From: Bugula neritina
Lineage: Eukaryota > Animalia > Bryozoa
Reading direction: 5' to 3'
Length of the DNA stretch: 64,000 bases
Assembly: GCA_964035545.1 (NCBI GenBank)
Contig: OZ037772.1
Coordinates: 6,246,889 to 6,310,888 of the forward strand
The position numbers and the translations under genes are program-made. Below the pieces are notes generated by a model, which saw only the letters and a program-made list of their open reading frames with translations, had not been told where the DNA came from and did no database searches. Below are positions 135 through 61,420 of this stretch, piece after piece. The first letter of the stretch is position 1. Each line of letters opens with the position of its first letter.

Positions 135-1599
135 CACCGTGATGTGGAGGAATATTGTTTGGAGAGAATAAAGACAAAACCATCTGACAAACCCAGAACA
201 TGTTTAGACCTACTGTGTCTTGGATATGGCGGTGCTAGTGGTGTTTACAAGATCTACCCAACAGGGCAGGAGCATTACTCGTTTGATGTCTTCTGTGACC
301 AGAAAACTGATGGAGGTGGATGGACTGTTAGTATCAGTATTCTGTTGTTGTTATATCATAGCGGTTGTTTAAAAAGATGTTTGTTTTGATTTTCAGATTA
401 TATAGCATTCACTCTTCCCTACTACCATATTCTGATATATATATTTATATTATACGTTGGGTTAGTTTTCAACAAGGAAAATATTAAAAGCAAACTTGCA
501 GAGCAAATATCAAACCTGAGACTGCATAATAGAGATACAGTTCTGTTAACTAATAAAATTAAATTCTCTTTTTACCTAATGTTAGGTGTTTCAAAGAAGA
601 ATGGATGGCTCAGTTGATTTCTACAGAAACTGGTACAACTATAAACTGGGTTTTGGTGATTTGAATGGAGAGTTCTGGCTGGGAAATGACAAGTTGGTAG
701 CTGCTCTGCAAGCTAATCCTAAAAATGAGTTGAGATTTGACCTTGAAAGTACAACCAATGAACAAGCGTATGCTGAATACAGCAGCTTCAATGTTGGTGA
801 TGAGTCCACTGGATATATTCTCTCAGTGTCTGGCTATACTGGAACAGCAGGTATGGATTTCAAACTCAGGATGCAAATCTCTGATCAATGCCACCATTGC
901 TATTGATAAAGTAATGCTCTATCCTGTTATAGTTCATATATATACATAAATGTTACTAAACTGTCATTGAACAAGTTTGATTAAAATATGTTTGTTGCAT
1001 TAAACAGTTTTGAGATATCATTTATTTGCAGTATATCAACTTTGTGTCAATGCTCCTATATATAATATATAACACATTACTTTATAGATTAGAAATTTTG
1101 GTTATATTTTGCTATTAAATTGTAAACAAATTGTCGCAAGATATTGATTGAGAAGTAATATTATTCTCCCAACTACATTAATTTAGTTTACATTGAAACA
1201 TTTCACATTGGGAAGCCACTCAAAGCCTATAGGCTAATATTCAACTCTTTTAGAAAAACTAAATATAAATTTTAAATAAGTAATTAATGGTGTTTTTCAC
1301 TCCGTGAAAATAGTTTTTTTTACACATGGAATATTCAACTTTTAGGAGACAGCTTTTCTGCTACTCACAATGGCTTGAAGTTTTCAACACACGATAGAGA
1401 CAATGATGTCATTCCAGGCTCGTGTGCAATAGACTATGTTGGCGCCTGGTGGTATGGAAAATGTCACATTTCTAACTTGAACGGCAAGTACCTGAATGGC
1501 GCTCATACTTCTTTTGCTAATGGTATAAACTGGAAAACCTGGAAGGGATACCATTATTCTCTCAAGACCACAGAGATGAAATTCCGCGGATATTTTTAA
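135..1599 (+). CDS. FReD-1: fibrinogen-related domain protein (ficolin/tachylectin-5-like). Exons 135-326, 586-850, 1346-1599; the signal-peptide exon is presumably upstream of the window
   Basis: Spliced frame is open with GT-AG introns (phases 0 and 1). Fibrinogen C-terminal motifs: [22 protein letters not shown]|[42 protein letters not shown]...[27 protein letters not shown]. Confidence 0.93.
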
Positions 1600-2329
1600 T
1601 TTCCAAAGTTTATATAATAGCAAAGCTTAAGCATTGTCGTTTATAATTAGACATAAACTTATCATTTTACTTGTTCATAAATAAATTACATTTTTTGTAA
1701 AATTAATACGTCAAAATCTTGTCTGTGTGGCACTTTTGGGTAATATATCTTATAAAACTAAATTACAAAATAAATCAGATATGTAATCAATTTTAAAATC
1801 TACAAATGTAAACGTAAATACAAGGTTTTAGAGTTGGTTTAGTAAACATAAACATTACAATTTTTTGTCCCGAAAGCCTTGCATGCCGCTTATCAAAATT
1901 GTAGCTTTCCTGCAAAAATTTTACATAACCGCATTGTTACAGATTAGAGGATAAAATTTATTAAACAAGTGTTACAAATCTATGCTTATAACATATACTT
2001 CTTTTGTTTGGTCTTTTGTAAGACTTTCATACCATAACTATTACATACGTAACATTGCAACAAAGAATTAGAAGATGTTGAAGTGCTCATACACAATGAT
2101 ATATGTAGTATATACATATCCAAAATTTAAACAGAAACAAAAAGAACATATTTATATTTAAGTCACAACATTTACTATAACAGCATAAATGAATATATAG
2201 GATAGTATATATAGTCTACATATATGAATAGCAACTTGGTTAGTAATATATAATACAGCCTATAATACTCAAATATAGACTACAGTTAATGTAAATATAA
2301 TATAGACTCCACAAACAGTGACTCATCAT

Positions 2330-4950
2330 TCTGCATCCTGATAGAGATAGTATATATAGGCACTTAGACACCAAATCAAATCTGAGCTGTTCATATTTAA
2401 AAAGATGTTAAATCAGTTGTAACAGGCTTCTGCCAATCTAAGTTTTAGTGTAATGACAGAAAATGTATCTTAAAGTATTTCATCAATTATGTTAGTAAAT
2501 CAACCTTCATTGTTTTATTTGCTTGAAAACAAATTACAGCTTTTGTATAAAAATCAAGCATCAAAATTATTTTTTGTTTTGTATTTTTGGGCAAGATTAT
2601 ATGTATGCCAACTGTTTACTATAAACCAAACAAGAATGTAGTTTGTTGCAAACTTTACAAATGCACACATAATTCTGAAAGTAGTTACATGCAGCCTTCA
2701 ACTTGCAAACATAAACTTTAAAACGTTTTGTATTGAAACCAGTTACATATGTGTTGTCGTTGCACTAAAAGACCAAGTGTGATATTGGCCTATATATAAG
2801 CGCAAGCTTAAAAGCTAAAATAGCAGAAACCTGTTACAACTGCTCCAATATCTTTTCAATGGGCCGCATTTGATTTGGTATTGAAGTGCCTAATATTATA
2901 TGGTCTACATATGAGGACCCATGCAAGGTGGCTTCTCACTATTTATTGTGCACAGGCAGCTCATTCTTAGGCTAGCCAAATCAAATAAGCATCATTGAAA
3001 AGATATTGGAGCAGTTGCAACAGGTTTCTGCTATTTCAGCTTTTAAGCTTGCGCCTGTATATAGGTCAATATCACACTTGGTCTTTTAGTGCAATGACAA
3101 CACAAATGCATCTTAAAATATAAACTTGCTGTTTGGTGGAATAGATGAGATGCAGAATCAGTTACTAATATAATAATTCTTATGCATGTTAGCTCGTGTT
3201 TTAACTATTTCTTAGAAATATCAGTTTTACTATAGCAGTCATCCTAAACTTGAATATGGAAGCATGCAAATGAAAGAAGATTGAATTTGCACTAAATAAA
3301 ATGGAAGGTATGTATTTGTGTAAGCATTCAAAAAACCAAATTTTTAAATGAAGATGAAAAGTTTAGAGATAAAATAGATAACATCTGAAGACAAAGGATT
3401 TGATGTTCAAAATGTAAGCTGTGTGCTAGATGTGAACATAATTATATTTGGAATGTTATATAGAACTTAGTATTCACTAACATAATCATGGCTGCTTGGA
3501 TTTCGATTGAACTCCTTTCAATGGCCCGTCTGGGTCACAAATTTGCTTTGAATTAAACATATAAATGCTATCTATTGTGATTATATATCTTTACATTCCT
3601 TCCTAAGCTGAGACTCCATCACTGCTGACTTTTTCAATTTGCATTTTGTCTAGCAATCGCCTTAAGAAATCAAAATTTTGTAATTTATTTCTATGCATGC
3701 AAATAAAAGAAGATCAAATTTGCACTTGATAAAATGCAAGATACTTTTATTAACGTCTGAAAAGCTAAATACCAGCGGATGAACTTAGAAAATGGACTAA
3801 ACAAGGATCAAATAGATACTATATATGGAAACAATTGAATTGACATCAACAAATAATAGCACTATGCTGTGAACATATTATATACATGAGTTTGAAAAGC
3901 CAATGAAATACTAAATATTTTAATCTTAGACAACAGCAGAGCAGACTCATGCCTTGGCAGTTTGATAATGGACGTATTTTACTCAAATAAAACAAGACTA
4001 TATTTGCACGATTTCAAAAAGTACCTGATATACCTACAGAACAATAGATACAAGAAAAACTGTATTATTTGTGTTATAATGGTATATGTATAGGGAGCAG
4101 CTGTGGTCTAGAGGTTAGAGCGTTTGCTTATATAGCATGCTATATAGTTAGAAAGTTCCTTGTTGGCTGAAAGTCAATTTTCACTAACATAATTAGCTTC
4201 TTGGAATTTCTATTGAACTCACATAATTTCAAAAGCATTTTTAGATCACAAATTTGCTTTGCACTAAGGATATACTTGCTATCTATTATGGTTATATAAT
4301 TCTGTATAATCTATCTCTACATCAGACCCAATCGCTGTTGACTTTCTTGATTTGCATTTCACTTATATAACAATCGCCTTGAAATCAAAATGCTGAAGTT
4401 TTCCTTGTAATCTATTTCCATGCATGCAAATGGAAAAAGATCAAATCTGCACTCAGTATAAAAATGACATGATTTTATTAGCATTTGAAAAAACTAAATA
4501 CCAGCGCATGAACTTGAAAAAAATTGATTAAACAAAGATCAAATAGATAATATATAGACACAATTGAATTTACGTCATAAAATGATAGCACTATGCTGTG
4601 AACATACATGCATTCAGGAAGTTCCGTGTTGACTAAAAATCAATATTCACTAATTTAGGTAATATACTATATAATGAGCTGCTTGAATTTGGCATTGCGC
4701 CCCAGTTTTCAAATGCACGTTTAGACCACAAATAGGCTACGTTAAGAATTTTGTTTATATGCTTTTTGTTTCAATTGCGCAGTTTTAAACCATATGCAAA
4801 CTTAGACACTTTCATTGAAAACATATTCACTTTGCAGGAGCACGGTGGTGAAATGTAACCGAATGTGCATGAACAATCAACCAATTTTAGAATAACAATT
4901 AATGGGAAGGATATTTTCTTGTAGATATCGGTATTTGTGTTATAATTATA
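2330..4950. repeat. Rearranged copy of the ~2-2.6 kb repeat unit arrayed at 28.8-39.3 kb
   Basis: Shares blocks such as aaagttccttgttggctgaaagtcaat and ggaagttccgtgttgactaaaaatcaat with 29.3-30.1, 31.9-32.6, 34.4-35.1 and 37.7-38.5 kb. Boundaries are approximate. Confidence 0.8.
2747..3108. repeat. Long imperfect inverted repeat (~130-bp arms, ~95-bp spacer)
   Basis: gtgttgtcgttgcactaaaagaccaagtgtgatattggcctat...ctgctccaatatcttttcaatg is the reverse complement of cattgaaaagatattggagcag...ataggtcaatatcacacttggtcttttagtgcaatgacaacac. Confidence 0.9.
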
Positions 4951-5076: not shown

Positions 5077-6698
5077 CTAGATCTATGCTTGAATGTATGA
5101 ATGAGTGTAGTTTTCTCCAAACTCAGTGTCAGTCTGGTGTCTTTGAGTCAGCAAACAGAACTTGTGGACTGTTTAATGAACCTTTAGTAGAGGTGGAGGA
5201 AGGAAACTTGGAGGAGATGGTTTACTTCATGAAGATCTTTTCAACGACAAGTATATATGTAACATTATTTGCTCAAATCTCTGAAGCAAAGTCTACTTAT
5301 GTTTTACAGCAATTCTTTAAAAACTTCAAACCAAGTTTTATATCATAAATGGTAAATCTAAGAATTGATTTAGAAGGCATTTAACTTTGAATCTACTGAA
5401 TCCACAAAAATAAATGTGCATTAAAAATTTCTTTAGCTCTGTGTCCGTTCCTATTGCTAATATTGTTTTGTTTTCCATTTAGGGGAACTTTTCTTCCTCA
5501 ATCAAACATTTTCTGATGTCATGAGATTTTACCATCAAAGAAAAGGTGAAGGTTATGAGTCATGCCTGTCTCTCTGCTCCTGTAACCAATCATGTGTTGC
5601 TGTGTCATATGACAAGAATACATCAACCTGTTTCCTGTCTGATAAACCAGAAGTGATAATCAACACAGAGCAGACTAGTAGACTGTGTTCTGTTAAGAAG
5701 GGGGTTTCTGAAGATTTGGTAATTTATGGATTCTTTACTGATCTTGCTAGAAGTAAGGAAAGTTCAAAAATTCATCACAGTTTATCAGGCTTAAAATTTA
5801 ACAATGCATATATTTTGCTTGTACAGCACGAGATGGTGTATAAATGTTTCAACAAGCTACTTGATCTATTTGTTACAAGATAGCAATCTATATATAATAG
5901 ATTAATTGTTACGTAACAACTATAGTTTGAACATTACTGTTTGAATGATGAATTGTAGATGAAACAGTTACTTTAAGTAGTGTAATGGCTGAAAGCTATG
6001 TGGGACAAAAGGTGATTGATGAAATTTATCTCCCATCCACTTCTGACATTGAGGAGCATCAAAGCTTAGCATTTACCCAAAAAGAACTGTCTCCATGGAT
6101 ACAAGTAGACTTAGCTACCAACTATCTGGTTGAGGGTGTCAAGATCTGGGACAGATCTGAGGCTACCAACCAAGGTGAGTCAATAAACAGCTTTTGGCTA
6201 TAATAAGTTGTAATAGTCTTTTATAATATATCACTGTGAAACATATTTTATATGATGAGCTATATATGCATTTATATATATGTTACATGCAGTAGCTATA
6301 TAGTGTAATATAGTTGATTATAAGGCTATTTGTCCACCTTCCGAAACATAGTCCAAAATAGAATATTTTACACATATATTATAATACAATCATTGAGCTT
6401 ATTAGTTAACAAAATAACTCTATTGTTTTTTGATGGTATAGTTCAGAATGACAGACTGGGTAATGTGAGAATAACAGTTGGTGAAACTAATACTAACTTT
6501 GATGATCCACCAGCAAATGAGATCTGTGACTACCTTCCTGGACAACCACCTGCAGATATATTTCTGGTTACATGTCATACTAGAATGTATGGTAGATATG
6601 TGAGAGTAACAGCTGTTGAAGTGAATGACTTTTTTAATATTTATGAGCTTGAAATTCATGGGTTAAAAGTTGTTGAACACCATGGTGATGGCGAGTGA
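5077..6698 (+). CDS. PAN/Apple-PAN/Apple-F-type lectin gene copy A. Exons 5077-5250, 5483-5752, 5959-6174, 6442-6698; no signal-peptide exon found
   Basis: Four open exons with GT-AG phase-1 introns and the same sizes as paralogs (174/270/216 nt). PAN-like CxxxC..C..F/Y....C patterns (ECMNECSFLQTQCQSGVFESANRTC; SCLSLCSCNQSCVAVSYDKNTSTCFL). F-lectin motifs DLA, SPWIQVDL, VKIWDR, RLGNVRITVG, C...C..RMYGRYVRV, IYELEIHG. Confidence 0.82.
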
Positions 6699-9364: not shown

Positions 9365-14929
<5,565 letters not shown>

Positions 14930-15339: not shown

Positions 15340-16190
15340 TGTTTGTTTGTTTGTTTTCTTTATTTCCATCAAAAAAAAACAAAAGGACAAAAAAATACAA
15401 ATATACAACAGTAACACAAAAAGAGCTAAATTCAATTTATATATAATATGAATCGAAGTCAAGATGGGGGCCCATGTGCTCAGTAGCATAGCTATTCAAG
15501 GAGCGGGGCCCAAGTGGCAGTTGAAAAAATAGTAGGAATTATTTATTCAGATTAAGTTAAAGATTTTAGTAGGTGCTTTTTCAACAATATTTTAAATGTG
15601 GCAAAGCTTTGATGATGTCTTAAAGTCAGAGGTAGTTTATTCCAATTGCTAGACATCTGGTAGGACACTTGACGATGACCTGCTGCGGAGGTAGAGAGAG
15701 GTAAGGGTAAGGAAAGTTCAGAATGTCTGGTGAGGTAAGTTGGTGGTTGTTTGGTGTGAGATGGAGTATAATAAGCTGAATGACCAAGAAGACATAGGCA
15801 GTAAATATACAAGAGATCAATAGGAAGAATTTCTGCTTTGATAAATAGAGGTGACGTGTGTTCAGTAGGTGATTTGTGGAAAATAATGCGAATAATGCGT
15901 TTTTGAATTAAAAGCAACTTGTTCAGATGGGTTTTAGGGGCATTTCCCCAGGCTTCTAAGCAATATGTAAGTTTGCTGTTTATCAGACTGTTATATAATA
16001 AAATCAAAGCTTTGTATGGTAAAAACTTTGAAGCTAAGTATATCATACCAGTTACTTTGTTGAGCTGAGTCCTTAAAGAATTTATATGAGCACACCAGTT
16101 TAAGTTAATGTCAATGACTACACCTAAAAATTTTATTTCTGAGCTAGGTGAGAGAGGTATATTGTCAATATTGTTGAGTTTCGATTGTAT
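15340..16190 (-). mobile_element. 3' fragment of a CR1/L2/Crack-type LINE
   Basis: Post-RT region IKFLGVVIDINLNWCAHIN...LYNSLINSKLTYCLEAWG...LLLIQKRIIRII...HTSPLF...WNKLP. The 3' end on the minus strand has aataaa plus a (caaa)n tail at ~15340-15365. Confidence 0.85.
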
Positions 16191-17197
16191 GAATAATGTA
16201 ATATATAGAAATATGCCTATATAAGCTGAGTTATGCATAAGCATCGTTTCTTTATATTTCATTTATTAATAATAGTATGAACCTTAGAGAGTATAATTTC
16301 TCTTGTTTACAGCTTGTATCATCTATAACATTTGTGTCTCTCCACCACTGGTTTTATTGTTATAGGTGAAGTCATGAAAAGTCTTTTAATCACATTAGTT
16401 TAGGTAAGTGGTTAGCTATATTCAATCAATTTGTTATACAATTTATCTAATCTTTTAATTGGTGAGCCGAGGTATACCAATCAGATTTCAGCATTAGATA
16501 ACAAATGAAGTCCTTCAAGGCAATAGATACACTTCTGTCACCTTGATGTATCAATAATAATCACACAATGAATATAGGTAGATTTTTTATCGTACTCAGC
16601 TTTTAAGCGATTAATTTTGATCTGTTTTAACATCATTAATCTTTTTTGCTATAATCCTTGCCTATCTCTATATAAATCATCTTCAAAAATAAACACAATA
16701 GTTTCATATCAGCATTCAGTAATGTGAATTTTGCCTAATGCTCAATTAATAATATTTGGCAAAGCGTTTTATGTCTTTGTAAATGCCTAAATAATTTTTA
16801 TATGTAACCACAAAGAAGCAAAAATGGTGGAAAATATCATGATTGGCCTGTGGGGATTGACTCTGATTGGCGGGTGGGAGCTCCGGCGATGTCAACGTAG
16901 AGAGTGGTACGGTGCCCCATTTGATTGCTATCATCTCTTGGAACTTTTACAATGTAATATAATATCGCGTCTTCTGCTGCAGGTATTTAATACATGGGAG
17001 GTTGGGGAGCATACTTCCTACAGCCACTACACACCACTACTCCTGCACCTATTCATTTCATGGTTAATTATTAACTTAATAATTCTAAAGAGGTTCTGAA
17101 TAAACACTGATATTAATAAACTAATTACGGAAGATATTTTACAAGAAACCATTGCTATTGTACTTCAGGCTTAAGTTTTAGTTATATATATTTTTAC

Positions 17198-18830
17198 TGG
17201 TGGTTAAAGATAATTTTATAAAATAAATCATCTCCTCCAAGTTTCCTTTTTCCAGCTCTACTAAAGATTCATTGAATAGTCTACAAGTTCTGGTCACTGA
17301 TTCAAAAACACCAGACTGACACTGACTGTGGAGATTACTGCATTGAGTCATACACCCAAGAGTAGAGCGACTTAAAAATCAATAAAGTTTTTCTACTCTT
17401 CAACTTTGTAGTTTATTTTAAATTAAAAAGATATAAGCTAACAGTGAAAAAATACCCTGCATCTACTAAGCATTACTGTTAGCAAACATATAGAATGTCT
17501 TTACCGAATTAAAATATATGATTCTTTATGCTAACGTTAATTAATATTTTAGTATATACTGTAACCTGATATAATAAAAATTTTGGCTTTAGAACAATGC
17601 ATCTAATTCAGACCAAATAGTTGCAAACAAAAGCTAATCTAAAAATCATAATATTTCACCTGTGTATTTATATAGGCTACATGCATAAATTTGTTTATAG
17701 GCAAGTTTAGTAAAAATCTTTTTGCGAATGAATTATTAATGTTTTCACAGGTTTTTGCAAAAAAAGATCAATAATTGAGCTTATTTATAGTCAATGCTCT
17801 GATTGTGTATACTAACTGCTTTTTATAGGTGCTAATAATTTGTTGAGCAAAAGGGCAGTTTAATTCATTTTGCCTGCACACGTATTAAATTGGACAATAT
17901 AACTTCCTGCGTACTATAGCCTTATATTATATAGCTTACATGTATATGATGTAAAATATATTGTCTTTATCTTCTTTTAATATCATATTACTGTAATTTG
18001 ACTGAAAGGAGAACAACTTCCAATTGTAATAATATGTTAGGGTAAGTTGCCTTCACAACTTTTTTTTAAAATAGTCGTTGAAATTTTCCTCCACTGGGAT
18101 TTGAACCTCGAAAGCTAATGAATAAACTTAACACATCATGTAGTGTTTGATTCATATGAAGCTAAGTTGTTATAAATATATTCTTCAACAAGTAACATAG
18201 CACAGAATCTTATAAGAGAAAATATGATATACAGAACACATTAAATAACACATACTATGGTAGAGCCGTGGCCTAGGGGTTAGAGTAAACATGAGGTCAT
18301 GAGTTCAAGCCCAGACAAAGCCCATTGGTGATGCAAAGAAGAGCATGCAGTCATATAATTGCTCCTGTGCTTTATTTGAATAAGTTTTTAGCCTGATTAA
18401 CAAAAACCCTTTCCACCGGGAGGGGGGGGGTTTCGCAGGAATAGCAGCTACATACACTTGCATGAGTTTAAACTTGCATGAGTTAAACAACATATAAACT
18501 CACTGAACAATTGGTATTTATTCAATAAAAATAAATATAGAGCAAATACAGCTTCTCTGAAAAGAAAATTGTAAAATGTAAAGTGTTAAAACAGTTGTAA
18601 AATTAGGTTATGCTTTCATTGATTACTGGTTGAATAGCTTAGAGCACAAAATCACTATTTTTCAACAGCTGAAATATTGTACCTTTTCTAGACTCCTGCA
18701 GAATCTGAAATCCTGAAATGTTGTATCCAGAGATCTGCTTTGTGCGATAATATTCTTCAGCAGGATCTATCAAAGCCACAACTGGTAGAAATTGTGACAC
18801 CAACAACATGTACACTAAGAGTAGCTCCAT
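17198..18830 (-). pseudogene. Partial PAN-F-lectin duplicate B' (exon 1 at 18830-18683, exon 2 at 17371-17198 only)
   Basis: Exon 1 reads MELLLVYMLLVSQFLPVVALIDPAEEYYRTKQISGYNISGFQILQESRK|gt. Exon 2 is open and homologous to 11205-11378, but its in-frame acceptor reads ttttAA|gtcgc (copy C: ttttAG|gtcgc). No exons 3-5 occur before gene B. Confidence 0.75.
18259..18486 (+). mobile_element. tRNA-derived SINE copy
   Basis: gtggcctaggggttagag (A box), gagttcaagccc (B box), and the same body as the 8095 copy. Confidence 0.7.
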
Positions 18831-19474
18831 GTTTGAAATAACAACTCTACTTGTGAAAAACATTTGACCAACTATTTGCTCATAGAATTGCTATGCCACT
18901 CAGAAGCATTTATACATGAATATATTTTTATGATGATGTATTATATTACGTTCAATTGAATTAAATTATTAATTCCTTTCAATTGAAAAACATTTGAAAA
19001 ACTATGTGTTTGCAGAATTTGTTTGGAGAGTTGCTAAGACACCCAGGGGCACAAAAGAACATGTCTAGTTATATATGCATATATATTTGTAACTATTTAT
19101 TATATTAAGTTCAATTATTATTGTCACACTTGTCATGCAAATCCCAGACAGCTAAACTTTTATTATTATAATGTATAACTTGTATTCCTGGTTCACCTGA
19201 TTACACTAGTTGTAATGAGTGCATGATTGCCTCATATATATAGCAACAGGGGCCCTATGGTATTGTCTACTGCTTTGTTTGTAATGGCTCTTTTGGTTAT
19301 GATGCTTCATTGAAACTCTGTTTGAGACACATGCAGTTGTGATTTATCTTACTTATCGTATAGAGGTATAAACCCATTCACAAGTCTCCACTAAATCCTG
19401 CACAAATAGCTACAACTCATTAGTTTAAGTTAGTATATTGTAGCCAATAGGAATAATACTTCAACTGAATGATA

Positions 19475-20218
<744 letters not shown>

Positions 20219-38897: not shown

Positions 38898-39265
38898 AGG
38901 ACGCAGCTGTGGTCTATCGGCTACTGGCTAGTGCGTTTACTTAGTGAACACAAAGTCATGGGTTCGAAAAATTGGTCATGGGTGATGTTAGGAAGAGCAT
39001 TCAGCCAAAATTGTTCCTGCATGCATGTGCCTCATCTGAATAAAGGCCTCGTCGATTGTGATTTTTTGTCCATCACCATCGTTGTGTACACCCAACGATA
39101 ATGATTTTGTTTGAATTCCCTCAAATCTTTTCGTTCAAATAATGTTTCGTGTCAAATAGACGATTTCGTGTGATTCTCACGATCGTGAGATGTCCTTAGC
39201 CTGATCGACCAAAAATCTTTCTATCAGGGTATCTCACAGAGATGGTGACTATAAACGTGCGCGAA
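38898..39265 (+). mobile_element. tRNA-derived SINE interrupted by a ~150-bp insert (~39045-39195)
   Basis: gctgtggtctatcggcta...gggttcgaaa. The body is split at cctcatctgaataaa|...|tccttagcctgat. Confidence 0.62.
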
Positions 39266-40097: not shown

Positions 40098-41484
40098 AAG
40101 AAGATGATTTATTACTTCGAGAAGCTATCTTTACTGACAAGTAAACATCATTCTTCTTTGAATCCCAAATTAAATTTTTTTTTTCATTTATAAAAGTCAA
40201 TGATAGTAACTTTAAAAACCATGTGTGCAGTTGTTGAAAACTATTTAGACTTGAACTCATTAAAAATGAAATAATAGCGTGCATCAATAGATTTCAAATT
40301 TATTTTGGCTGATACTGACCGTCTTTTAATTTTAGGGGAAAATATTTTCTTGAACAAAGCATTTTCTGATGTGACAACATATTACCATCAGATAACCACT
40401 TCTTGTCACCAGCTGTGTGTTTCCTTCTGCTCACAGAATAAATCATGTGTTACTGTGTCATATGACAAGAATACATCAACCTGTTTCCTGTCTGATAAAC
40501 CAGAAGTGATCATCAACACAGAGCAGACTAGTAGCCTGTGTTCTGTTAAAAAGAAATACTCTGAAAAGTTGACTGTCTATGGTTTCTCTACTAATCTTGC
40601 TAAAGGTAAAGATAGCCAGTTGCTAATGCTATTTTGAGTTATAAGCTTTTTGAACATATATCAAGACTAAAAATAATGCTACAAAGTCAGTAACTTTAGT
40701 AAATCACATATATGTGACATTATATCACAATACTTTACATGATGTCATATAAGCTTTAAAGAGTATTTGCTCTTCATATTGTATAAGTCCTGTAATTCAT
40801 GTTATTCTGGTAACTTTTAGATAAAGTTGCTACATCAAGCAGCATATATGGAGCAAACTTGTCAGGGTTGAAGGCTATTGATGGAATTTATCTTCCCTCG
40901 GAAACTGGCTTAGGAGAGCAAGGAAGTTTATTTGCCACTTACCAAGAACTGTCTCCATGGCTGCAAATAGACTTAACCACTAGTCACTTTGTTGAAAGTG
41001 TCAAAATATGGGACAGATCTGAGTACAGTTTTCAAGGTCAGTGAAATGTTTGTACAGCTGTTGTATAGTTTTGACGTTTTATCTATTGCAATAGAGTCTG
41101 AACAGATTAGTGGTGAGTTATTTGTATTCAATGGTAATTTACAAAGATGTTTGCAATAGTATACTCGTAATATTTTTATATTTTCAAGGTTAAATTCAAG
41201 TTAATACAAAACTAGTTTTCAAATTTATAGATTACAATGATCGACTAGCTAATGTGAGAGTAGCAGTTGGTGAAACTGACACCAACTTTGAAGATCCACC
41301 AGAAGATGAGATCTGTGACTACCTTCCTGGACAACCACCTGCAAATATATTTCTGGTTACATGTCATACTAGAATGTATGGTAGATATGTGAGAGTAACA
41401 GCTGTTGAAGTAAATGAGCTTCTTAATATCTATGAGTTGGAAATCCATGGGTTAGAAATTGTTGAAAGTTATACTATGAACTAA
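40098..41484 (+). pseudogene. 5'-truncated PAN-F-lectin copy D. Exon-2 remnant ~40098-40140; intact exons 40336-40605, 40821-41036, 41231-41484
   Basis: Exons 3-5 are open with canonical splice sites. Only the last ~40 nt of exon 2 (gaagctatctttactgacaa|gtaa) remain. Confidence 0.78.
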
Positions 41485-42060
41485 TGTGATTCATGTTCAG
41501 TTATGTGTGTGTGTGTGTGTGGGGTGTGTGTTGCTATATATGCAATTCAATTATAAGCATTAGAGCCAAGTTGTTTGGCAACATCATCAAATGCATGCAT
41601 TCAAACAAATGATAGGATAGTTAATGCAATGGGGAGATATATAAATCAATAAGACTTTTTCAACTAGGCAGTTTGTAAAATAAATATTTCATCAGGTAGT
41701 ACAGACACCTGTTGTGACTTTGTGTTATTACGGCTGGAATATATTGTGCCATTTGATTATTTGCTGTTTCTTATATTTATAAGGTATACTCTGATAGTTT
41801 GATCCGTTGAATAGTCTCAAAACACCCATCAATGTTATAGGCTCTTGGTCTAAGTAGAAATCTGGCCATTGACTATTACACAAACCACAGATGACAAAAT
41901 TTACATTGCATTTTAAACATTTTGCTTCGTAATATTTTAGTGAATATATAGCATTCAAATACTATATAGCGTGCTGTGTTGTTTTTTGGGCCATATTTTA
42001 ATCTCTATGCTTTTGTTTTTTTATCAAATTATAGTTTACTTATCACCAGTTCAACTTTAT

Positions 42061-43329: not shown

Positions 43330-44802
43330 TTATTGTAAAGTCATCAGTCACACTGTAGTAAAGTATACTACCAATTATAATAAATGTGTTTAATAGCTAT
43401 TATACCACACCTTTTATGAGTTAATTAAGTTTTAATTTATTCGAAAATCTGATTTACAAACTTAATTAGCATACCTATTACAGAGTAAAATCATCAGAAA
43501 TAAAAGTACTTCAGCACTTAAAGACAGTGGTGAGACACAATAACAGTGTTGTTGTCTGAACTGATGTGTATTGGCTTTGTTGAAATAAATTATAAACAAC
43601 TTTTGTGCATGAGTTCTTTCACTAAATTTAATATTGAGATCTCTGGTCTATAGAAACAAACCTTGTGTATGTTTTATGAAACTATTTTTGTTCTGTATGA
43701 GAATTGAAGTAATAGGTATGGAAGTGCAGACAATAGGTGCATGAGGAACATCATGGATATCGAATATATTTCGAACTATATTCAGTATTTGTTATAATTG
43801 CTATAATAGGAACATGCAGTAAGACCATTAGGAATAAAATTGTTTGTTTTTCAAGTTTTGTTTTCACTGCAAAAGCCCTGTGTCAAGCAGGTAACCTTAC
43901 TCATAGCAAATTGAGCTCTGTATGGCAGGAATTTTCAAGCTAACTCAATATTGTGACACTTTATACTCACAGGCTACAGCTTGTCATAATGCAATCAATA
44001 CTCCGCTGGTGTAACAAAGAAACATATGGTGGGGAAAATCAGTTCAGCTATTCACTCGAGACTGAGCAACAAAAATATGTTTATAATGACTGCCATGCTG
44101 GAGCTAGTTCCTATGAATTAAAAGAATTCTCCTCATACGCAACTTATATGTACTACATCATAACCATTAACTTGGTTATGTAGAGTGGAGAGCTTCCTGC
44201 TTAAAAATTATTGAGCATTTTTATATATCTTAACATATCAATTCTTGTAACAATCATAAAATCGTCTTTTTTATCATTTGTCGAAGCTAAACCGGTTTTT
44301 ATGTCTTAACGAACTAGCTGTAAGTTACATTCATAAATTTATGACAAAAATTGCTAGAAAGTTTGCAAGCATTTGAATATATGTTATATATAGTGTGTGA
44401 TTTGTCAATAAACACTTTACTTTAATTAATATGTTCTTCATTATATAAACATCACTAACAGTGTTGGTGCACATTAAGTCAATGTATGACTACATATGGC
44501 AATATAAGTAGTATTTATACCACAGAACATCCAGTAAAGATTTGCAATAAACAGTATAGACCCAGTTCATTGTAAATATTATAGAACCATATAATAAAAG
44601 GGCATTGATTTTATAAGGTATTTAAATGAAACATTGCCTTGATTAAAAATGCATGTTATTCACAGGGGTACAATGCTAATATTATGGTGCAAGTATATAT
44701 TGAAATGAACAGAAGCAACACATAAATAAACAAAACTCTCCTAATTTACACAAGTAGATAACTGTTCTAACATTCAGCACTTGCTAAGTTTATTTAGTAA
44801 AC

Positions 44803-44959
44803 ATGAAGCTTCCTTTGGCGTGCATACTGTTGATGTGTGAGTTTTTATCAATTCCAGCCTTGAACTTGACAGAAGAATATTATTGTACACAGCATATATC
44901 AGCGTTCAACAGCTCAGGATCTCAACTACAGGAGTCTACTCTTCAAGATTCTAGACAAG
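44803..44959 (+). other. Duplicate signal-peptide exon 1 of a PAN-F-lectin gene (alternative first exon or orphan) with a GC donor
   Basis: MKLPLACILLMCEFLSIPALNLTEEYYCTQHISAFNSSGSQLQESTLQDSRQ|gcgagc. Part of a duplication of ~43840-45640 and ~46760-48500. Confidence 0.75.
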
Positions 44960-45643
44960 GCGAGCACCTTTTACGTTGTATCAGGTCATCGAGCTGAAAT
45001 TGAAGTAGGCAAAAGTTGAAAAGGTAAATTTATGTCCTAAATCATTTTACCCTAATCATCAGCAGTTATATAGGAGTTAACAGAGTTTGATTGGCTACAA
45101 ATATGTTCTGTTTGCATTTTTCTCAATACAAAAGAAAACAGTTACTAGAACGAGATCTTGTGCTACATATTAGTTATTTTACAAAAATGAGTGTTTATAG
45201 ATGTAGCAGATAAACAAATTAATTAATCAGACAGCATAATTTTTAGAAATGAGCATGAATTTTGGCAAAACAACAAAGTCTTACAAATAAACTTTATTTA
45301 CCATCAATCAAATACAGCAATAATATTAGTATAGAAGTAAACTCTCTTCAAATACTAAATAATCTATAACTAATAGACTAAAATAACATTAACTCATTTA
45401 AATATAATGTATAGGATTTTATTCAAGTTTTAAATTTATTTATACACAAAAAAACAAAAAATGCACAATATTCAAATACAAGAAAAGTTGGTTAAAAAGT
45501 ACTATATTTCATAGTATAGATACAATGTAAGCATGCATAATGCTATCAAATAGTAACTGTACATATATATTTCATGACACAGGCTTGTTTAACAAATATA
45601 ACAGCTCAACAACTATTAGCAGTTAGGAGACACAGCTACACAC

Positions 45644-46560: not shown

Positions 46561-47650
46561 ATATGCTATAACGGTGATGTGCACTATAGCTAAAAATGTG
46601 ATGAAATACTGAATTAAGAGTTAACTTTAGAGTTTTTCACTTAGAAGCAATACCACATGTCATACTAAAACTAGTATATATTGTTATTAGCTCCTTTACT
46701 AAAGCTTTTGACACCATAGAAATCTTTGTGTTTATACTGCTTGAAAAAGTGACTTTGAAATTGTTTGTTTTTAAGTTTTGTTCTCACTGCAAATGTACTG
46801 CTTAGAGCAAGTAGCTTTCCTAGCAAATTACACTCTGTGTGGCCGGAAGTTACATGCTAACTCAATGCTGTGACACTATGTATTCACAGGCTACAGCTTG
46901 TCATAAGGCAATCAGTATTCTGTTGGTGTGACAAATAAACATCTTGTGGGGACAATCAGCTTGTAGCTATTCACTTGAGTCTGAGCAACAAAAGATACAT
47001 TTAGTCGACTGCCATGCCGGAGTTCCTATAATGAGTTAAAAGGATTCTCTTTATAATATGCAACTTACATCATAATAATTAAGTTAGTTGTATAAAGCAA
47101 ACAGTTTCCTACTTAACAATCATTGAGCATTGTAATATATCTTAACATATCAATTCCTGAAACAATCATGAAACTGTTATGAAATTGTTACATTCATAAG
47201 TTTATGTCAGAAATTGCTAGAAGGTTTGCAAGCAATTGAATTGATGTTATAATGTGTGATGGTTAATAAACACTTTACTATAATATTTAATATGTTCTTC
47301 ATTATATAGACATTACTATGGCAGTGTTGGTGCATCAAGTCAATGTATGAATATATACGGCAAGTAGTATTCATACCACAGTAAAGATTTTCACTAAGCA
47401 GTATAGACCCAGTTCATTGTAAATATCATTGAGCCATATGATAGAAAGGCATTCAATTTATAATGTATTTGAATAAAAACTTGCCTTAATTAAATATTTA
47501 TGCTATTCACAAGAGTATATAATGCTAATAATATAGTGCAGGTATATATTGGAATGAATGCCAGCACATGAACTATAAACAAAACTCTCCTAATTTAAAC
47601 AAGTAGATAGCTATTCTAACATTCAGCACTTGCTAAGTTTTTTAGTAAAC

Positions 47651-50466
<2,816 letters not shown>

Positions 50467-50569: not shown

Positions 50570-50860
50570 GGTTACAGGTAAAAATAGCACAGGAAAATCA
50601 TCTTGACACATTTTTAATATTAAGGTTTGGGGTGGGAAGTTAGAGATTTATTATTATATAGAAGGTTTACCATGGTGTGAGATGTAGAGGTCAGTTTTTG
50701 GATTAAAAGTTTGAGCTTGGGGTGGGGTTTGGAAAGTGTATTTGAGTTTGCGGTTTGTTGTTGGGAAAGTTTACCTACCTTTTTACCTACTTTTCCATTT
50801 GTGCCATTATTACCTGCGTTATTTCTGCCCATGCCATTTTCACTTCTGCTACTTTTACCT
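50570..50860. mobile_element. Short interspersed element with inverted ggtaaaaatggcaca-type motifs; second copy at ~58110-58460
   Basis: ggttacaggtaaaaatagcacagg at the left, tgtgccattattacc / tgccattttcac / cttttacc at the right, and a G-rich gggtttgggg core. Family not identified. Confidence 0.5.
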
Positions 50861-51346
50861 AAAATTGCATTGTTAATTATAACGACATAATTCAAAACAT
50901 GCGCATACATAACTGATGTGCGATATATTAAGTACAAAAATCAATAAACATCCATAAATAGACATTGGGGTGAATTAAATCTATAACTATTGCATCTACT
51001 AACACTATATCAGTTGTCATCTAAGTGTTTGTTGGCATAATTAGGTAGAATTTAGAGATGTTGTAACTGGTGTCTGTACTGTTCAGCTCAAGTGTATTGT
51101 GACATTACATTGTTTGCTGTTATGTAAATTAACCATATAGAAGAGTTGGATTAACATTTATATAAATGTAGGTTGGGAAAAAAAGTGTTGTTTAAGTATA
51201 ATATGATCATCAATTGTTATGCAGTACTTGGCAGTGAGTCACAAATGTCAAACTGTTTGTTAGATAACACTATACACATATTTGTTTAATAAAATTTTAG
51301 TTAATATTATTTAAACACTAAAATTATTATAAATAATATAGTTGTT

Positions 51347-53405: not shown

Positions 53406-53520
53406 CACATACACATATACCTACACACATATACCTATACACATACACATCTACACATATACACACATACACCGGTCCTTCGTAGATACTGCAGGAAAAA
53501 AATCCAATGAATCTAAACAT

Positions 53521-53553
53521 TTGAATTTGATTGGCTAGCACAAACTATAAAAA
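53521..53553 (+). promoter_or_regulatory. Putative FReD-3 core promoter: inverted CCAAT + TATA
   Basis: ttgaatttgattggctagcacaaactataaaaa. The TATA is 95 nt before ATG 53641, matching FReD-2. Confidence 0.65.
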
Positions 53554-53640
53554 TCTCAAAAACTCTCGATTTTCTGTATTTTAGTTTTTACTGTAGAACC
53601 ATAAACTCATACTGTTTTGCATAGTTCTATGACTGGAATC

Positions 53641-55848
53641 ATGCACAAATACGTTATATTTGCACTTTTATTTACAGCTTCACTTCAGGCGGTGAGTATA
53701 TATTAGAAGCTATACTTTAACAAACAATTTTTCATGCTATAATATATTTACTACCACTAAAGACACTTATTATATAACTTTGTTTTTAATAATTCACTTC
53801 AGTGACTAAATAAATATCATATTACTTGCAATAAGATGTACACAAGCAACTATTGTATTTTTCACTTTTTAATGTAATATAAAGTAAAGCTAGCTTAATA
53901 TTTATTAAGTGGAGATACTATTATAAGTTTGGCAATGCAATATTGTTATCTTTACGCTTACATTTCTACAAAAGTAACTCGATCACAGCTGGAAAAAAAA
54001 TAGAACTTAAATGCATTTGGGTGATTATGTTCAATATTTGTTTGGCGTTGCAAAAGAATTACCAAAATATCAGAACTGAATGAAATATGCTGCTATGACA
54101 ACAAGTTCATGCATTTACATTACAACCGTTAAACAACATATTTTAGAATTTTGCTCTACATTGCTAGGCTTTCTCCTTTCTGTTTTGCTCTAAAAATGTT
54201 TCATGTTATAATTGGAATTTCATCAAATGAAGAGATAAGATTTAATCTATTTCAATACTTGAGTAGTTAGTTCCACTTTGAGTTATTGTATCTTCAAATA
54301 TTGCATTTTTAGCAAAGTGATGTCAATGAGTATTGCTTAGAGAGAATGAAAACACAACCTTTCTGCAAACCCAGAACATGTTTGGACTTACTGTGTCTTG
54401 GTTTTAATGGTACTAGTGGTGTTTACAAGATCTACCCTACAGGAAATCGTCGTTACTCATTCCGTGTTTTCTGTGATCAGAAAACTGATGGAGGTGGATG
54501 GACTGTGAGTGTTGTTTTCTTGTTTAAAACTAAATGTAAACTTTATGCTACAGTGGTTGTGTAAAATTGCTGTGATTGTTAGAATGTATAGCATGTATTG
54601 CAGTGTTTTTATAGTTATATATTTATATTGTATCATAGCGATTATATTAAGCAACAAAGATATTAAATATAAAACCTGCATGAAACATGCTTTTTTTATT
54701 TTAGACTACTTGATTGACATGTGGTATTGTTAGTTGACAAAATAAATTTCTTTGGTGAGGTGTTCCAAAAAAGAATGGATAGCTCAGTTGACCTAATTAT
54801 TTTTCCTCAATGTTAGGTGTTTCAAAGAAGAATGGATGGTTCAGTTGATTTCTACAGAAACTGGTACAGCTACAAACTGGGTTTTGGTGATTTGAATGGA
54901 GAGTTCTGGCTTGGAAATGACAAGTTGGTAGCTGCTCTGCAAGCCAACCCTAAGAATGAGTTAAGATTTGACCTTGAAAGTACAACCAATGAACAAGCTT
55001 ATGCTGAGTACAGCAGCTTCAATGTCGGTGATGAGTCAACTGACTATATTCTCTCAGTGTCTGGCTATAATGGTACAGCAGGTATGTATTTCTAACAGGA
55101 TGCAAATGTTTGATGAGCAAGGTAAACTTTTATTAGTTGTTCATCATCTGTAACATAATGTTTCATATTGCAACATCTTGCGTCATGTAACTAAATTTTA
55201 CTAAATTGTTGACTATGACTTCAAATAACTTTGATTCAAACATCTTGTGTTGCATTATAAAAGCTTTAGCTTATTTACTTGGAATGTATGAAGTTTTTGA
55301 AACTCTATAACTATCTAATTTGTTTGATAAATTCTTTGTTAAAATTATAGTTCTACTTAATCAGAATCTGCAGTTAACTTGTCGCAAATTACTGTTTGAG
55401 AATTGTTGTTTTCTTTCAACTAAAGTAACTAGCCTATTTTATAACAATTTACTCAAAAAAGCTACTTAAAGGCTAAGCCGATTTGAATTCGATTTTCACC
55501 GAGCATCAAAATATGAATTTTAATCGAGCAATTAAAAGAACTTTATTCACTTCATGAAGATAGTTCATTATAAATTAATGAAGTGTCTAATTTTCAGGAG
55601 ACAGCTTTTCTGTTCACAATGCAATGAAGTTTTCAACACGAGATAGAGACAATGACGTTGAGTCAACCAATTGTGCAGCTCAATACCATGGTGCTTGGTG
55701 GTATATCAAATGTCATGCTTCAAACTTGAATGGCAAATACTTGAATGGCACTCATACTTCTTTTGCTGATGGTGTTTTCTGGAAAACCTGGAAAGGATAC
55801 CGTTATTCTCTCAAGACCACAGCGATGAAATTTCGTGGATATCTGTAA
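53641..55848 (+). CDS. FReD-3, complete secreted fibrinogen-related lectin, 252 aa. Exons 53641-53691, 54313-54504, 54817-55081, 55598-55848
   Basis: Signal exon MHKYVIFALLFTASLQA|gtgagt. 759 nt is open, with all fibrinogen C-domain motifs including [15 protein letters not shown]. Confidence 0.92.
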
Positions 55849-57341
55849 TTTCTCAGGTTAACATGTAGTAATCGCAAAGTTTGAACTATTCACTTCAGTT
55901 AACAAATATGCTTTGTTGCTTTTTTTGCTTTTGTATAAATTACGTACAATTTTTGTAAAAGTCAAGCACCAAAATTTTGCCTGTTTAATATTTTTGAGTA
56001 ATATGTTATATGAAACTCTAATAGAAAAAAATGATTGTCACTTATAAAATTTACAAATGTTTAAATAAAAGGCTTTTATAGACTCCTTCTTGCCAACACT
56101 AAAAATCTTTTTACTGCAGATCATTGCATGCAGTCTATTGCTAGTTTTGTTTTTCTGCATTATTTTGCAAAAATTTCATTGTAGATTTGATGGCAGCAAT
56201 CATTAGGTAAATCTTACATATCTATGCCAGCACATGCCCTCATCTTGTCATGTTATTTTTGTTAAATTTCAATAACTATACGAAACATTGCATAACAAAG
56301 AATTATAAAATCTTAGTGATTTGTACAAAACAATATAAACAGTTAAAATGGCTCTGTTGAAATCAAAATTAAATCCAATCATTTAGGGTATATAGGTATT
56401 ATCTATTTGCCTATCAATATATATTATGTCAATCTTGCATATATTAGTCATAAATTTGGATATTTTTTAAATATTCGCAAGTGCTGCTTTTCAATTCAAC
56501 AAATACTTTAAATATATTCAAACTGAAAAAGTCTTCCATTACGATGTTAAAGCTTGTGGCTGATTGCAACTCTGTATAATTACAATGAGTTATCAAGAAC
56601 ACAAGGAGAGACCATATAAACCTTGTATAATAAAAGCAAAAGTTATACAAAGTTACAAAAGTTGGTAAATTTTGGTTTTCACGTCTAACACGGAACTTCT
56701 TCAAAGCCGAGATTCTCACCATAGATCTGTCAATATCTTTCTTATGTTATCTATTTGAACTTTGTTCATCCCATTCTCTTGTCGTTGCGCTGATTGAAAG
56801 AGCAGCTGTACTGACATATAGTATAGTTATTATTTGTTACTGTATATTGTGCTATGCTATAAAGTTATGTACATTATATGTGTTATAGTATTTAAATTAT
56901 AGCTAACTATGATGTGGGAATATACTTTTTAGTTTATGGGAAAAAAAATGAAAATTTTGCAGTAGGTATTGCGAAAATTTGTATAGGTATAATAGACTAT
57001 TTAACACCATAGAATTCTCTGTGTTTGTACTGCCTAAAAACATCAATTTGAAAGAGTGGCTTTAACAGGTGCTGGAGATGTTTTTTCAAAGTTTTCTTTT
57101 ATTTGTGATTAAGTACCAATCTTGCCAAAGGCGAAGAGGGCCAGTTTTCTACACTATAAATTTTCCTGAACAGATATACAGTGTTAGAGGCCAACAAAAC
57201 TTTTATAAATAATTTTAAATCGAATGGATTACTCGCCTATACACAACAAAATATAGCAAAGCATAACATGTATCATTTAAAGAATTATGTGGCCCAATAT
57301 ATAATAAACCCAATCATTTATTTTTGTGTGAGAAATTTTAG

Positions 57342-58005
57342 ATATGACTGCTACATCAAGCAGCATGTATAGATCACACCTTTCAGGGATCAAGGCTATT
57401 GACGGAATTTATCTTCCCTCTGAATCTGGGTTGGAAGAAAATGATAATTTATTTGTCAGTGATAGAGAAACGTCTCCATGGCTGCAAATAGACTTAACCA
57501 CCAAACACTTTGTTGAAGGTGTCAAAATATGGGACAGGTCTGAGAGCAGCGTTCAAGGTCCGTGAAATGTTCGTGCAGCTGTTGTATAATATTGATGTTT
57601 TATCTATTTCAATAGTGTCTGAACAAATTAGTGGTGAGTTATTTGTATTTAATGATAATATACATAGATGTTTGCAATAATATACTTGTAATATTTTTAT
57701 ATTCTCAAAATTAAATTCAAGTTAATACAAAACTAGTTTTCAAATTTATAGATCACAATGATCGACTAGCAAATGTGAGAGTAGCAGTTGGTGAAACTGA
57801 CACCAACTTTGATGATCCACTAGAAGATGAGATCTGTGACTACCTTCCTGGACAACCACCTGCAGATATATTTTTGGTTACATGTCATACTAGAATGTAT
57901 GGCAGATATGTGAGAGTAACAGCTGTTGAAGTGAATGACCATTTTAGTATTTATGAGCTTGAAATCCATGAGTTAGAAATTGTTGAACAGCCTGCTAACA
58001 ACTAA
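57342..58005 (+). pseudogene. 5'-truncated copy F: F-type lectin exons only (57342-57557, 57752-58005); exon-3 remnant at ~57114-57130
   Basis: Both exons are open with intact splice sites. Remnant taccaatcttgccaaag|gcgaag. Upstream ~56.4-57.1 kb is an inverted relative of the ~51.7-52.3 kb sequence. Confidence 0.75.
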
Positions 58006-59740
58006 TGTGATGCAATCTTACTTGCAAAGACTTAAGCCTACTATTATGTGCTTGAAGGTGTGTGTATACGCACACGCATCAAAGTATATATAGATGTTAG
58101 AGTTGTATGGTTACAGGTGAAAATGGCACAGGTAAATCAGATTGGCGCAGGTAAAAATGGTACAGGTGATAAACGGACATGCAGTACTAATCACACAAAT
58201 TGGCAAATAACAATGAAATGGTACATTTTAGGGTTTGGGGTGAGATTTATGATTATATAGAAGGTTTATCATAGTGTGGAATTTAGGGGTAAGTTTTTGA
58301 ATTTAAAGTTTGAGCTTGGGGTGGGGTTTAGAGATTGTATTTGAGTTTGGGGTTTGTTGTTGGGAAAGTTTACCTACCTTTTTACCTACTTTTCCATTTG
58401 TGCCATTATTACCTGCGTTATTTCTGCCCACGCCATTTTCACTTCTGTTACTTTTACCTAAAATTGCATTGTTAATTATAACGACATAATTCAAAACATG
58501 CGCATACATAACTGATATGCGATATATTAAGTACAAAAATCAATAAACATCCATAAATAGACATTGGGGTGAATTAAATCTATAACTATTGCATCTACTA
58601 ACACTATATCAGTTGTCATCTAAGTGTTTGTTGGCATAATTAGGTAGAATTTAGAGATGTTGTAACTGGTGTCTGTACTGTTCAGCTCAAGTGTATTGTG
58701 ACATTACATTGTTTGCTGTTATGTAAATTAACCATATAGAAGAGTTGGATTAACATTTATATAAATGTAGGTTGGGAAAAAAAGTGTTGTTTAGGTATAA
58801 TATGACCATAAATTGTTATGCAGTACTTAGCAGTGAATCATAAATGTCAAACTGTTTGTTAGATAACACTATACACATATTTGTTTAATAACATTTTAGT
58901 TAATATTATTTAAACACTAAAATTATTATAAATAATATAGTTGTTATAATGCTGTGTTGTTTTTTGCACCATACTGTAATTTTTGCTTATTTTTTTTGTT
59001 CTATCTTTAATACTATATCACCACGCATAGTTCAATTTTATGGCATACAAGCATTGTATACCCTATATAGGGCCATAACTGTTGCAAAGCGTCTATCATA
59101 AAAGCTGTTTAATAACTACCACACTTTTTGTGACCTTAAATATTTGAAATTTTTCTACAGTCTGACATGAAATAAAACGATATTTACTAGACAAACAACT
59201 TTTTCAAAAAGAAAAATACGATCAGCACCGATAAAAACAGAAAAGACACTATCACAGTAATAAAGGTGTCAGAACTGATGCTTAGTTGCTTCTTTTTAAG
59301 TGAGATGACAAAAGTTCTGTATGTTTGATAAAAAAAGCTCTTTACAAGGCAGAACTAGTTTAACAATTATTGCAGTCAATCTAATAAGCTGCGTGAAGAA
59401 CATCTATTAATTATTAGAAACTCTAGCACTGAACTCAGCTTAACACCTTTGCTCATTCCCAAATATAAACAAAAAAATAACTGCACTTTTTAGGTTCAGG
59501 TTTGAAGTTGGAGGCATAAGTTTGAACTTTAAACCTCCACTACAAATTCAGGACTTTCAAGCTATACTGCACTCAGTCACCCTCAATTGAGAGCTCCGAA
59601 ATAAAATCAACATGAAATTGCCACATAGAGTCTAAACTGCAAAAAAACATGTGTTAGGAGTTACCTGCTCCATTCAATAGATTGACTGGGAGAACAGTAC
59701 TGAATAGGCCAATTGTACTTAGCCAGGGCTTCACTGGTCC

Positions 59741-60020
<280 letters not shown>

Positions 60021-60806: not shown

Positions 60807-61228
60807 TAGCTTAATATTTAATAAGTGGGGATACTATATTAAGTTTCGCAATGCAATATTGTTATCTTTACGCTTACATTTTTGCAAAAGTAACTCAATC
60901 ACATCTGAACAAAAATTTAAACTTAAATGCATTTGGGTGATTATGTTCAATATTTGTTTGGCGTTGCAAAAGAATTACCAAAATATCAGAACTGAATGAA
61001 ATATGCTGCTATGACAACAAGCTCATGCATTTACATTACGACTGTTAAACAACATATTTTAGAATTTTGCTCTACATTGCTAGGTTTTCTCCTTTCTGTT
61101 TTGCTTTAAAAAAATTTCATGTTATAAATGGAAGTTCATCAAATGAAGAGATAAGATTTAATCTATTTCAATACTTGAGTAGTTAGTTCCACTTTGAGTT
61201 ATTGTATCTTCAAATATTGCATTTTCAG

Positions 61229-61420
61229 CAAAGTGAGATAGATGAGTATTGCTTAGAGAGAATGAAGACACAACCTTTCTGCAAACCCAGAACATGTTTG
61301 GACTTACTGTGTCTTGGTTTTAATGGTACTAGTGGTGTCTACAAGATCTACCCGACAGGAAATCGTCGCTACTCATTTCGTGTCTTCTGTGATCAGAAAA
61401 CTGATGGAGGTGGATGGACT
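61229..61420 (+). pseudogene. FReD-4: exon 2 only, a recent duplicate of FReD-3; exon 1 absent; intron 2 interrupted at 61670
   Basis: QSEIDEYCLERMKTQPFCKPRTC...DGGGWT|gtgagt. 60809-61669 is nearly identical to 53893-54750. The remaining exons may lie beyond the window. Confidence 0.78.

Follow-up and report, generated by a model that had tools for sequence, protein, structure and literature searches.

The 64,000-nt stretch of Bugula neritina DNA analysed here (the window; contig OZ037772.1, hereafter C8, positions 6,246,889-6,310,888, in a 216-Mb assembly) contains four fibrinogen-related domain (FReD) genes and seven genes or gene fragments of a PAN-PAN-F-type-lectin-like kind, referred to below as P genes. 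We consider it likely that the locus is an array produced by repeated segmental duplication, in which a two-gene cassette was co-amplified by physical hitch-hiking and then subjected to recombination and decay. The cassette would comprise a five-exon gene for a secreted P protein (exons signal, PAN1, PAN2, FL1 and FL2), a spacer (3-3.7 kb in the units), a four-exon gene for a secreted FReD-only protein, which would correspond to a ficolin/tachylectin-5-like head with no collagen stalk, and a 2.5-kb repeat. The locus would thus offer a clean, datable case in which a tandem array received a foreign gene and went on to amplify it together with its neighbour; a naive gene count would misread it as the independent expansion of two immune-type families. 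To our knowledge, bryozoans are a phylum with almost no immune genes described, and we provide gene models and intact/broken calls for two lectin families in one of them.

Layout of the locus

The exon families were defined as clusters of stop-to-stop open reading frame (ORF) pieces, three for the FReD, two PAN-like and two making up the lectin domain. Exon queries read from copy E and FReD-3 were mapped with tblastn over the window and 246 kb of surrounding DNA, and the boundaries were set by coordinate extension from the matches plus direct reading of the sequence. Positions outside the window are given as window-equivalent coordinates, in the same numbering. The exon maps reproduced exactly the gene content and order of the original prediction: FReD-1, A(+), B(-), B'(-), C(+), FReD-2, D, E, FReD-3, F, FReD-4. 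Within the window, intact-looking copies were limited to B, E, FReD-1 and FReD-3, and about half of the copies were broken.

On C8, 13 FReD loci of this subfamily, interleaved with P genes, lay between 6,212,712 and 6,369,934, a mixed zone of ~157 kb. The sole C8 member outside it was an isolated exon-4 fragment (Fa, 6,192,712), and both sides of the zone were P-only stretches (P1-P4 on one, K-Q on the other). Same-strand units with a P gene followed by an FReD were found at P6, C, E, F, G and H, and K/FReD-8 had the identical arrangement in inverted orientation.

Co-duplication of the two families

The claim that both families duplicate together was borne out by the DNA, as the units were mutually colinear across P gene, spacer and FReD to the FReD 3' flank, at 84-97% identity. 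C matched G over 21356-29043 with 70997-79394, in successive pieces of 97, 92, 90, 84 and 89%, followed by 70% over the exon-4 region, so that the 84-97% range extends to FReD exon 3. C and H were 88% identical over 5.3 kb (23890-29088), and P6 and G agreed at 94-96% over the entire unit, minus 4.5 kb deleted in P6. In P6 (site at C8 6,240,985-6,241,388, window-equivalent -5900 to -5500), the spacer and the first two FReD exons were lost with this deletion. The DNA upstream of FReD-1 resembled the C spacer (88% over 2.2 kb, then 75%) but has no accompanying P gene. The E-values of these self-alignments, from 0 to 1e-40 over kilobases, are not those of chance matches.

Paralogous flanks had also been proposed. 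This held for FReD-1 and FReD-2 (1-2587 with 26383-29036, 73% over 2.75 kb by self-blastn) and for C and D, in two pieces (23045-23575 with 41505-42060, 69%; 23897-24139 with 43494-43731, 77%), but not for the F flank at 59.0-59.6 kb, which shared ~100 bp at 71-78% with the flanks of C and D. The real relative of the F flank is that of E (50617-51346 with 58225-58945, 95%).

One of the duplications was an inverted block of 24 kb. Window positions 4948-29096 (A, B, B', C and FReD-2) corresponded at 91-95% identity to 188043-120461 (O, N, N', K and FReD-8), ~95 kb distant. The two copies differed by a long interspersed nuclear element (LINE) in B, an additional 24 kb with M and L, and 22 kb inserted between K and FReD-8. 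LINE reverse-transcriptase fragments were located within intron 1 of B and next to it, at 12796-14096 (+) and 15555-16262 (-); the first is absent from the 91-95% identical twin N and was therefore inserted after the inverted duplication. Long (AT)n tracts lay either at the edges of units or within the first intron of P genes (19472-19610, 19891-20222, 48753-48933 and 59741-60020), and two breakpoints of the inverted duplication fell exactly in such tracts.

Full-length copies of the 2.5-kb repeat, found 3' of several FReDs, were confined to a 125-kb zone of C8 (6.243-6.368 Mb), and the repeat is therefore a component of the duplicated unit. It contains two short elements that are dispersed genome-wide (query positions 854-1157 and 1348-1565).

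Colinear blocks that include non-coding DNA, together with pseudogenes and fragments, document birth-and-death evolution of the array. That the repeats are instead an assembly artefact, with haplotigs or collapsed or expanded copies placed in tandem, is scarcely credible: high heterozygosity is usual in marine invertebrates and the array does consist of repeats, but even the closest units are 3-6% apart, with kilobase indels and distinct lesions (stop, deletion, LINE, lost exons), all units lie in a single 13.3-Mb contig with 0 Ns, short-read contigs from a DNA run (possibly the assembly's own sample) matched the unique FReD-3/F junctions with 0 mismatches, and independent JGI metagenome contigs likewise carry tandem P-gene arrays.

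Gene trees and mosaic exons

All 11 C8 FReDs in the FReD tree, which also included copies from contig C1, formed one clade (support 100/100). This clade was nested among the C1 copies, with those at 23.041 and 23.283 Mb as its sisters, which points to one arrival and subsequent amplification on the spot. The P tree, which covered 310 kb around the window, contained two clades (99/99), and every FReD-linked P gene fell into one of them, clade beta, which also holds the unpaired P3, P4, P5, D and L.

A check of congruence between the two trees gave a divided answer. C/FReD-2 with K/FReD-8 and P6/Fe with G/FReD-5 were congruent pairs, whereas H was incongruent and the overall correlation was not significant (Mantel r 0.44, p 0.065). 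The trees agree only partly because the units have recombined. The P gene of C was 98-99.5% identical to that of G by segment, whereas exon 4 of its FReD was only 78.5% identical to G and 81.5% to H. FReD exon 2 occurred in two well-supported types (98/96 and 96/95), and this grouping was rejected on exon 4 (AU p 0.0004, the exon-4 tree having been seen before the test). The exons thus have mosaic histories.

Whole-exon dN/dS was 0.11-0.46 for each exon, with dN exceeding dS in almost no pair; the copies therefore are, or recently were, under constraint, and positive selection was not evident from these whole-exon values. The exons on the ligand side were the most diverged, with synonymous divergence (dS) of 0.65 in FReD exon 4 against 0.26 in exon 3, and 1.03 in FL1 against 0.31 in FL2. 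The surroundings of exon 4 were also deeply diverged, since between C and G intron 3 could not be aligned and the 3' flank was 70% identical. Because the flanks share this depth, framework exons have been exchanged and homogenised while old ligand-side lineages were retained. The divergence on the ligand side reflects this process, and not demonstrated positive selection.

We propose that one FReD from the C1 cluster would have landed next to one P gene in an existing P-gene array and would then have been co-amplified with this neighbour; the 24-kb inverted duplication would be one of the steps. Units would afterwards have become mosaic, and many copies pseudogenes, as a result of recombination or gene conversion among units, of deletions, and of LINE and microsatellite insertions. 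The most likely mechanism of the amplification is unequal crossing-over of paralogous units.

Is the pairing obligate?

A genome-wide search, whose FReD and P counts are lower bounds, placed FReDs of this subfamily also in an FReD-only cluster on C1 (23.04-23.37 Mb). P arrays were located on C8 at 4.7-5.9 Mb and on C9, C5, C2 and C3, with no FReD match within hundreds of kb. Closer to the window, the FReDs Fb-Fd are three consecutive genes uninterrupted by any P gene. The two families therefore do not form an obligate two-gene module. Of the original idea of a mixed module undergoing birth-and-death evolution, block duplication and decay (colinear units, truncations, stops) stand, but paired genes occur only within ~157 kb of C8; the further suggestion of one functional recognition locus found no support, given the FReD-only groups and the P arrays without FReD in the same genome.

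The best relative of the lectin in another species came from the bryozoan Watersipora subatra (assembly GCA_963576615.1), in which OY755166.1 and OY755167.1 each carry one single-domain lectin gene that is divided into FL1 and FL2 exons as in Bugula, at ~43% identity. This shared split indicates that the exon structure predates the divergence of the two bryozoan lineages. No PAN or FReD exon was detected at E <0.01 within 10 kb of these two lectin loci, and no pairing was seen at them. Our literature searches found no paper describing a P-FReD pairing.

It is unlikely, in our view, that selection has kept the cassette together as a functional module, in which FReD and P act together (as a complex or in two-step recognition of one target) and linkage is maintained so that matched variants are inherited and amplified jointly. 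The order, strand and ~3-6 kb spacing are constant in at least six units, all FReD-linked P genes belong to the clade without the His of the fucose triad, the ligand-side exons are the most diverged in both genes, and both families are represented in the same RNA-like run. However, the pairing is not obligate, as seen from the C1 cluster, the Fb-Fd triplet, P arrays without FReD in five regions, the unpaired members of clade beta and the two W. subatra loci; half of the paired copies are pseudogenes; and the spacers are conserved because the duplicates are young. More doubtful still is the idea that P and FReD are a co-adapted secreted recognition pair of this colonial, symbiont-bearing bryozoan, with FReD exon 4 and FL1 diversified by exchange between units and the framework exons homogenised, which would make the locus a polymorphic allorecognition or symbiont/microbe-recognition locus built from two lectin families.

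Several points do weigh against co-amplification by hitch-hiking. The conserved orientation and spacing of the pairs in at least six units would also be expected under selection for linkage, the correlation between P and FReD distances is positive and not significant, the origin of the FReD-linked P clade appears from the trees only within 310 kb, and the RNA data tie expression to family members, not to individual copies. Nonetheless, the co-duplication of P and FReD is best read as ordinary segmental duplication, and a functional link between the families is no more than possible.

Separate transcription units

Each P gene terminates in a stop codon and a separate signal exon, with a GT donor, is present in each FReD type, and thus FReD and P are two separate genes and separate transcription units. 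A read-contig alignment over window positions 53410-58200 (FReD-3 to F) gave 83 RNA-like contigs. The RNA-like run covered FReD-3 and F at their exons only, with zero depth in introns and spacers, and contained the joints 53687 to 54311 and 54506 to 54823 (FReD-3) and 57544 to 57757 (F). The contigs were mostly 90-99% alike to the window copies (at least 99% in 7 of the 83), and therefore document expression and splicing of the families, not of these particular copies.

That a P gene and the downstream FReD exons are one gene, yielding a PAN-PAN-F-type-lectin-FReD fusion by read-through or alternative splicing, is very improbable: the two lie close together on the same strand, and in the off-window unit P6 the deletion puts the lectin stop 400 bp from FReD exon 3, but the last P exon has a conserved stop with no in-frame donor ahead of it, every FReD begins with its own ATG and signal-peptide exon, an RNA-like contig splices the FReD signal exon to exon 2, and none of the RNA-like contigs joins lectin to FReD exons.

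Gene models

The features of the window are listed in Table 1. All four introns of E and of the other P genes are in phase 1, and every internal exon is therefore symmetrical (1-1), a layout of the kind that would allow exon shuffling of PAN and lectin modules. The E product has a signal peptide, two PAN-like modules and a lectin domain. The relic upstream of E has an open signal exon (44803-44959) with a GC donor. A was regarded as 5'-truncated because it has no detectable signal-peptide exon; its inverted twin O retains this exon, and the A/O colinearity ends at 4948.

Table 1. Coordinates and state of the genes, fragments and repeats in the window.
Feature	Position	Strand	Exons	Remarks
FReD-1		+	exons 2-4: 135-326, 586-850, 1346-1599	intact-looking; AG/GT at each boundary, 0 stops; PF00147
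Spacer repeat, partial copy	3473-4950	+		2.5-kb repeat found 3' of FReD genes (self-blastn)
A	5077-6695	+	PAN1 5077-5250, PAN2 5483-5752, FL1 5959-6174, FL2 6442-6695	no signal exon found
B	9365-14929	-	14929-14785, 11378-11205, 10548-10279, 10052-9834, 9618-9365	intact, five exons; canonical fucose-triad His kept
(AT)n and LINE reverse-transcriptase fragment	12130-14096	+		in B intron 1; PF00078, E 4e-21; colinearity gap 11793-14159
B'	17198-18830	-	signal exon and PAN1 only	fragment; PAN1 acceptor AA instead of AG
(AT)n tracts	19472-19610, 19891-20222			at inverted-duplication breakpoints; block ends 19610, 20141
C	21352-22864	+	four exons	good splice sites; no signal exon; stop 10 codons early
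C to FReD-2 spacer	22865-25888	+		colinearly conserved in units G, H and K and 5' of FReD-1
FReD-2	25889-28032	+	25889-25939 (signal peptide), 26517-26708, 26972-27236, 27779-28032	pseudogene, in-frame stop in exon 3
Spacer-repeat array	29108-39043	+		~4 tandem copies of the 2.5-kb repeat
D	40336-41484	+	PAN2, FL1 and FL2 only	signal exon and PAN1 lost or degenerate
Relic of E 5' region	43837-45641	+		tandem duplicate, 80% to 46758-48494 (self-blastn); promoter/exon-1 region
E	47651-50466	+	47651-47807, 48950-49123, 49329-49598, 49771-49986, 50213-50466	intact, ~357 amino acids
FReD-3	53629-55848	+	53629-53691 (signal peptide), 54313-54504, 54817-55081, 55598-55848	intact, ~258 amino acids; all boundaries GT-AG
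F	57342-58005	+	lectin exons FL1 and FL2 only	fragment
FReD-4		+	exon 2: 61229-61420	no signal exon found; exons 3-4 5.6 kb downstream, past the window

The signal-peptide exon of FReD-1, MQMYFFLTLLLAVPLHA followed by the donor GTAAGT, sits 552-602 nt upstream of the window start. In the FReD type other than that of FReD-3, a conserved signal exon, MQMYF(F/L)LTLLLAVPLHA followed by GTAAGT, lies ~580 nt 5' of exon 2. In the FReD-3 product, a short linker connects the signal peptide to a single FReD. Within intron 2 of FReD-3, just 5' of the true acceptor, we also observed a short, degenerate repeat of the first part of exon 3 (54758-54790). The window is AT-rich (~31% GC, 0 Ns), and no Rfam families were found in it.

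Domain identity and the sugar site

The three FReD exons matched Pfam PF00147 with E-values of 1e-7, 1e-28 and 1e-27 (32, 101 and 97 bits; cutoff 22) and jointly covered profile positions 2-219 of 221, so that the three exons combined give a full-length FReD. Exons 3 and 4 had ficolin-1 and ficolin-2 (E 1e-22 to 3e-29), FIBCD1 and TL5A as best matches. The putative calcium motif of lectin-type FReDs (FSTRDRDND) and the C-H/AWWY acetyl-pocket region align residue by residue with ficolin-2. A lectin or recognition role of the FReD and P proteins is suggested by such similarities.

The P-gene exons scored 19.9, 21.3 and 22.3 bits against PAN_1 (PF00024; cutoff 21.4) as single-exon queries, and their Cys pattern fits the PAN core. 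The first lectin exon, likewise queried as a single exon, matched PF22633 weakly (20.9 bits, cutoff 27.8). Its profile ranked solved F-type lectins at the top, 3CQO (6.8e-8) and then 3LE0, 4GWI, 2J1R and 1K12, and a place in the F-type lectin fold family is thus indicated by profile similarity.

When the FL2 profile was run with full HMMER against 1.84 billion representatives, only 52 proteins reached E ≤1e-3, none below 1e-30 and mostly exon-sized ORFs. Among the 10 long matches that were scanned, eight carry PF22633, seven of these with 3-14 matched stretches, and none of the 10 contains a PAN. A word-index protein search with the lectin exon retrieved no named protein, only exon-sized ORFs of JGI metagenomes and one Logan record. 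The lectin exons were 76-95% identical to ORFs of JGI metagenome contigs, the names of which carry AY690838. This is the accession of the B. neritina mitochondrial genome (PMC2678162).

Most copies deviate from the canonical fucose triad (His, Arg-x-Asp, Arg/Lys). The His is retained only in B, N and M, plus, as judged by eye, the broken exon of Q; it is replaced by Ala, Val or Ile in all 12 clade-beta genes, and by Phe, Asn or Gln in A, O, P1 and I. Both triad Arg residues are kept except in L (second Arg to Met), Glu stands in place of the Asp, and the second Arg is further away than in the canonical motif. Since the His is lost, the FReD-linked P genes are poor candidates for canonical fucose binding, and it is unlikely, judging by their residues, that they are canonical fucose binders. 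B, which keeps the His, E, which has lost it, and FReD-3 were singled out as copies for expression and testing.

Comparison with known systems

Lineage-specific tandem expansion of secreted lectin-type FReD genes is shared with the invertebrate clusters of FReD or FREP and lectin genes (Anopheles/Drosophila FBG, Biomphalaria FREPs, oyster lectins; PMC1242226, PMC2429915, PMC4346834, PMC12074976), as is birth-and-death evolution with pseudogenes and with variation focused on the ligand-binding half of the FReD. In contrast to those clusters, the Bugula unit holds two unrelated families, and its FReD is a bare signal peptide plus FReD with no immunoglobulin-superfamily or collagen part. The Sp185/333 (SpTrf) genes of the sea urchin (PMC5103432) are similar in being clustered immune-type genes with short-tandem-repeat flanks, among which recombination produces segmental duplications, deletions and mosaic genes, but their cluster is a single gene family. 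In the Bugula locus, a comparable link between (AT)n and breakpoints comprises two coincidences only.

The P lectin domain is closest to the F-type lectins (AAA 1K12, MsaFBP32 3CQO, SpX-1 2J1R; PMC5712786, PMC12221842), with both Arg positions kept. It differs from them at the other triad positions described above, and also in that the canonical Cys are absent. PAN is not named as a partner domain of F-type lectins in the matching passages of the review PMC5712786. Compared to ficolins, FIBCD1 and tachylectin-5A, the Bugula FReD is without a collagen-like or transmembrane part, with ~20 residues between the signal peptide and the FReD, whereas exons 3 and 4 match these proteins and the DRDND calcium motif and the C-H/AWWY pocket region align with theirs.

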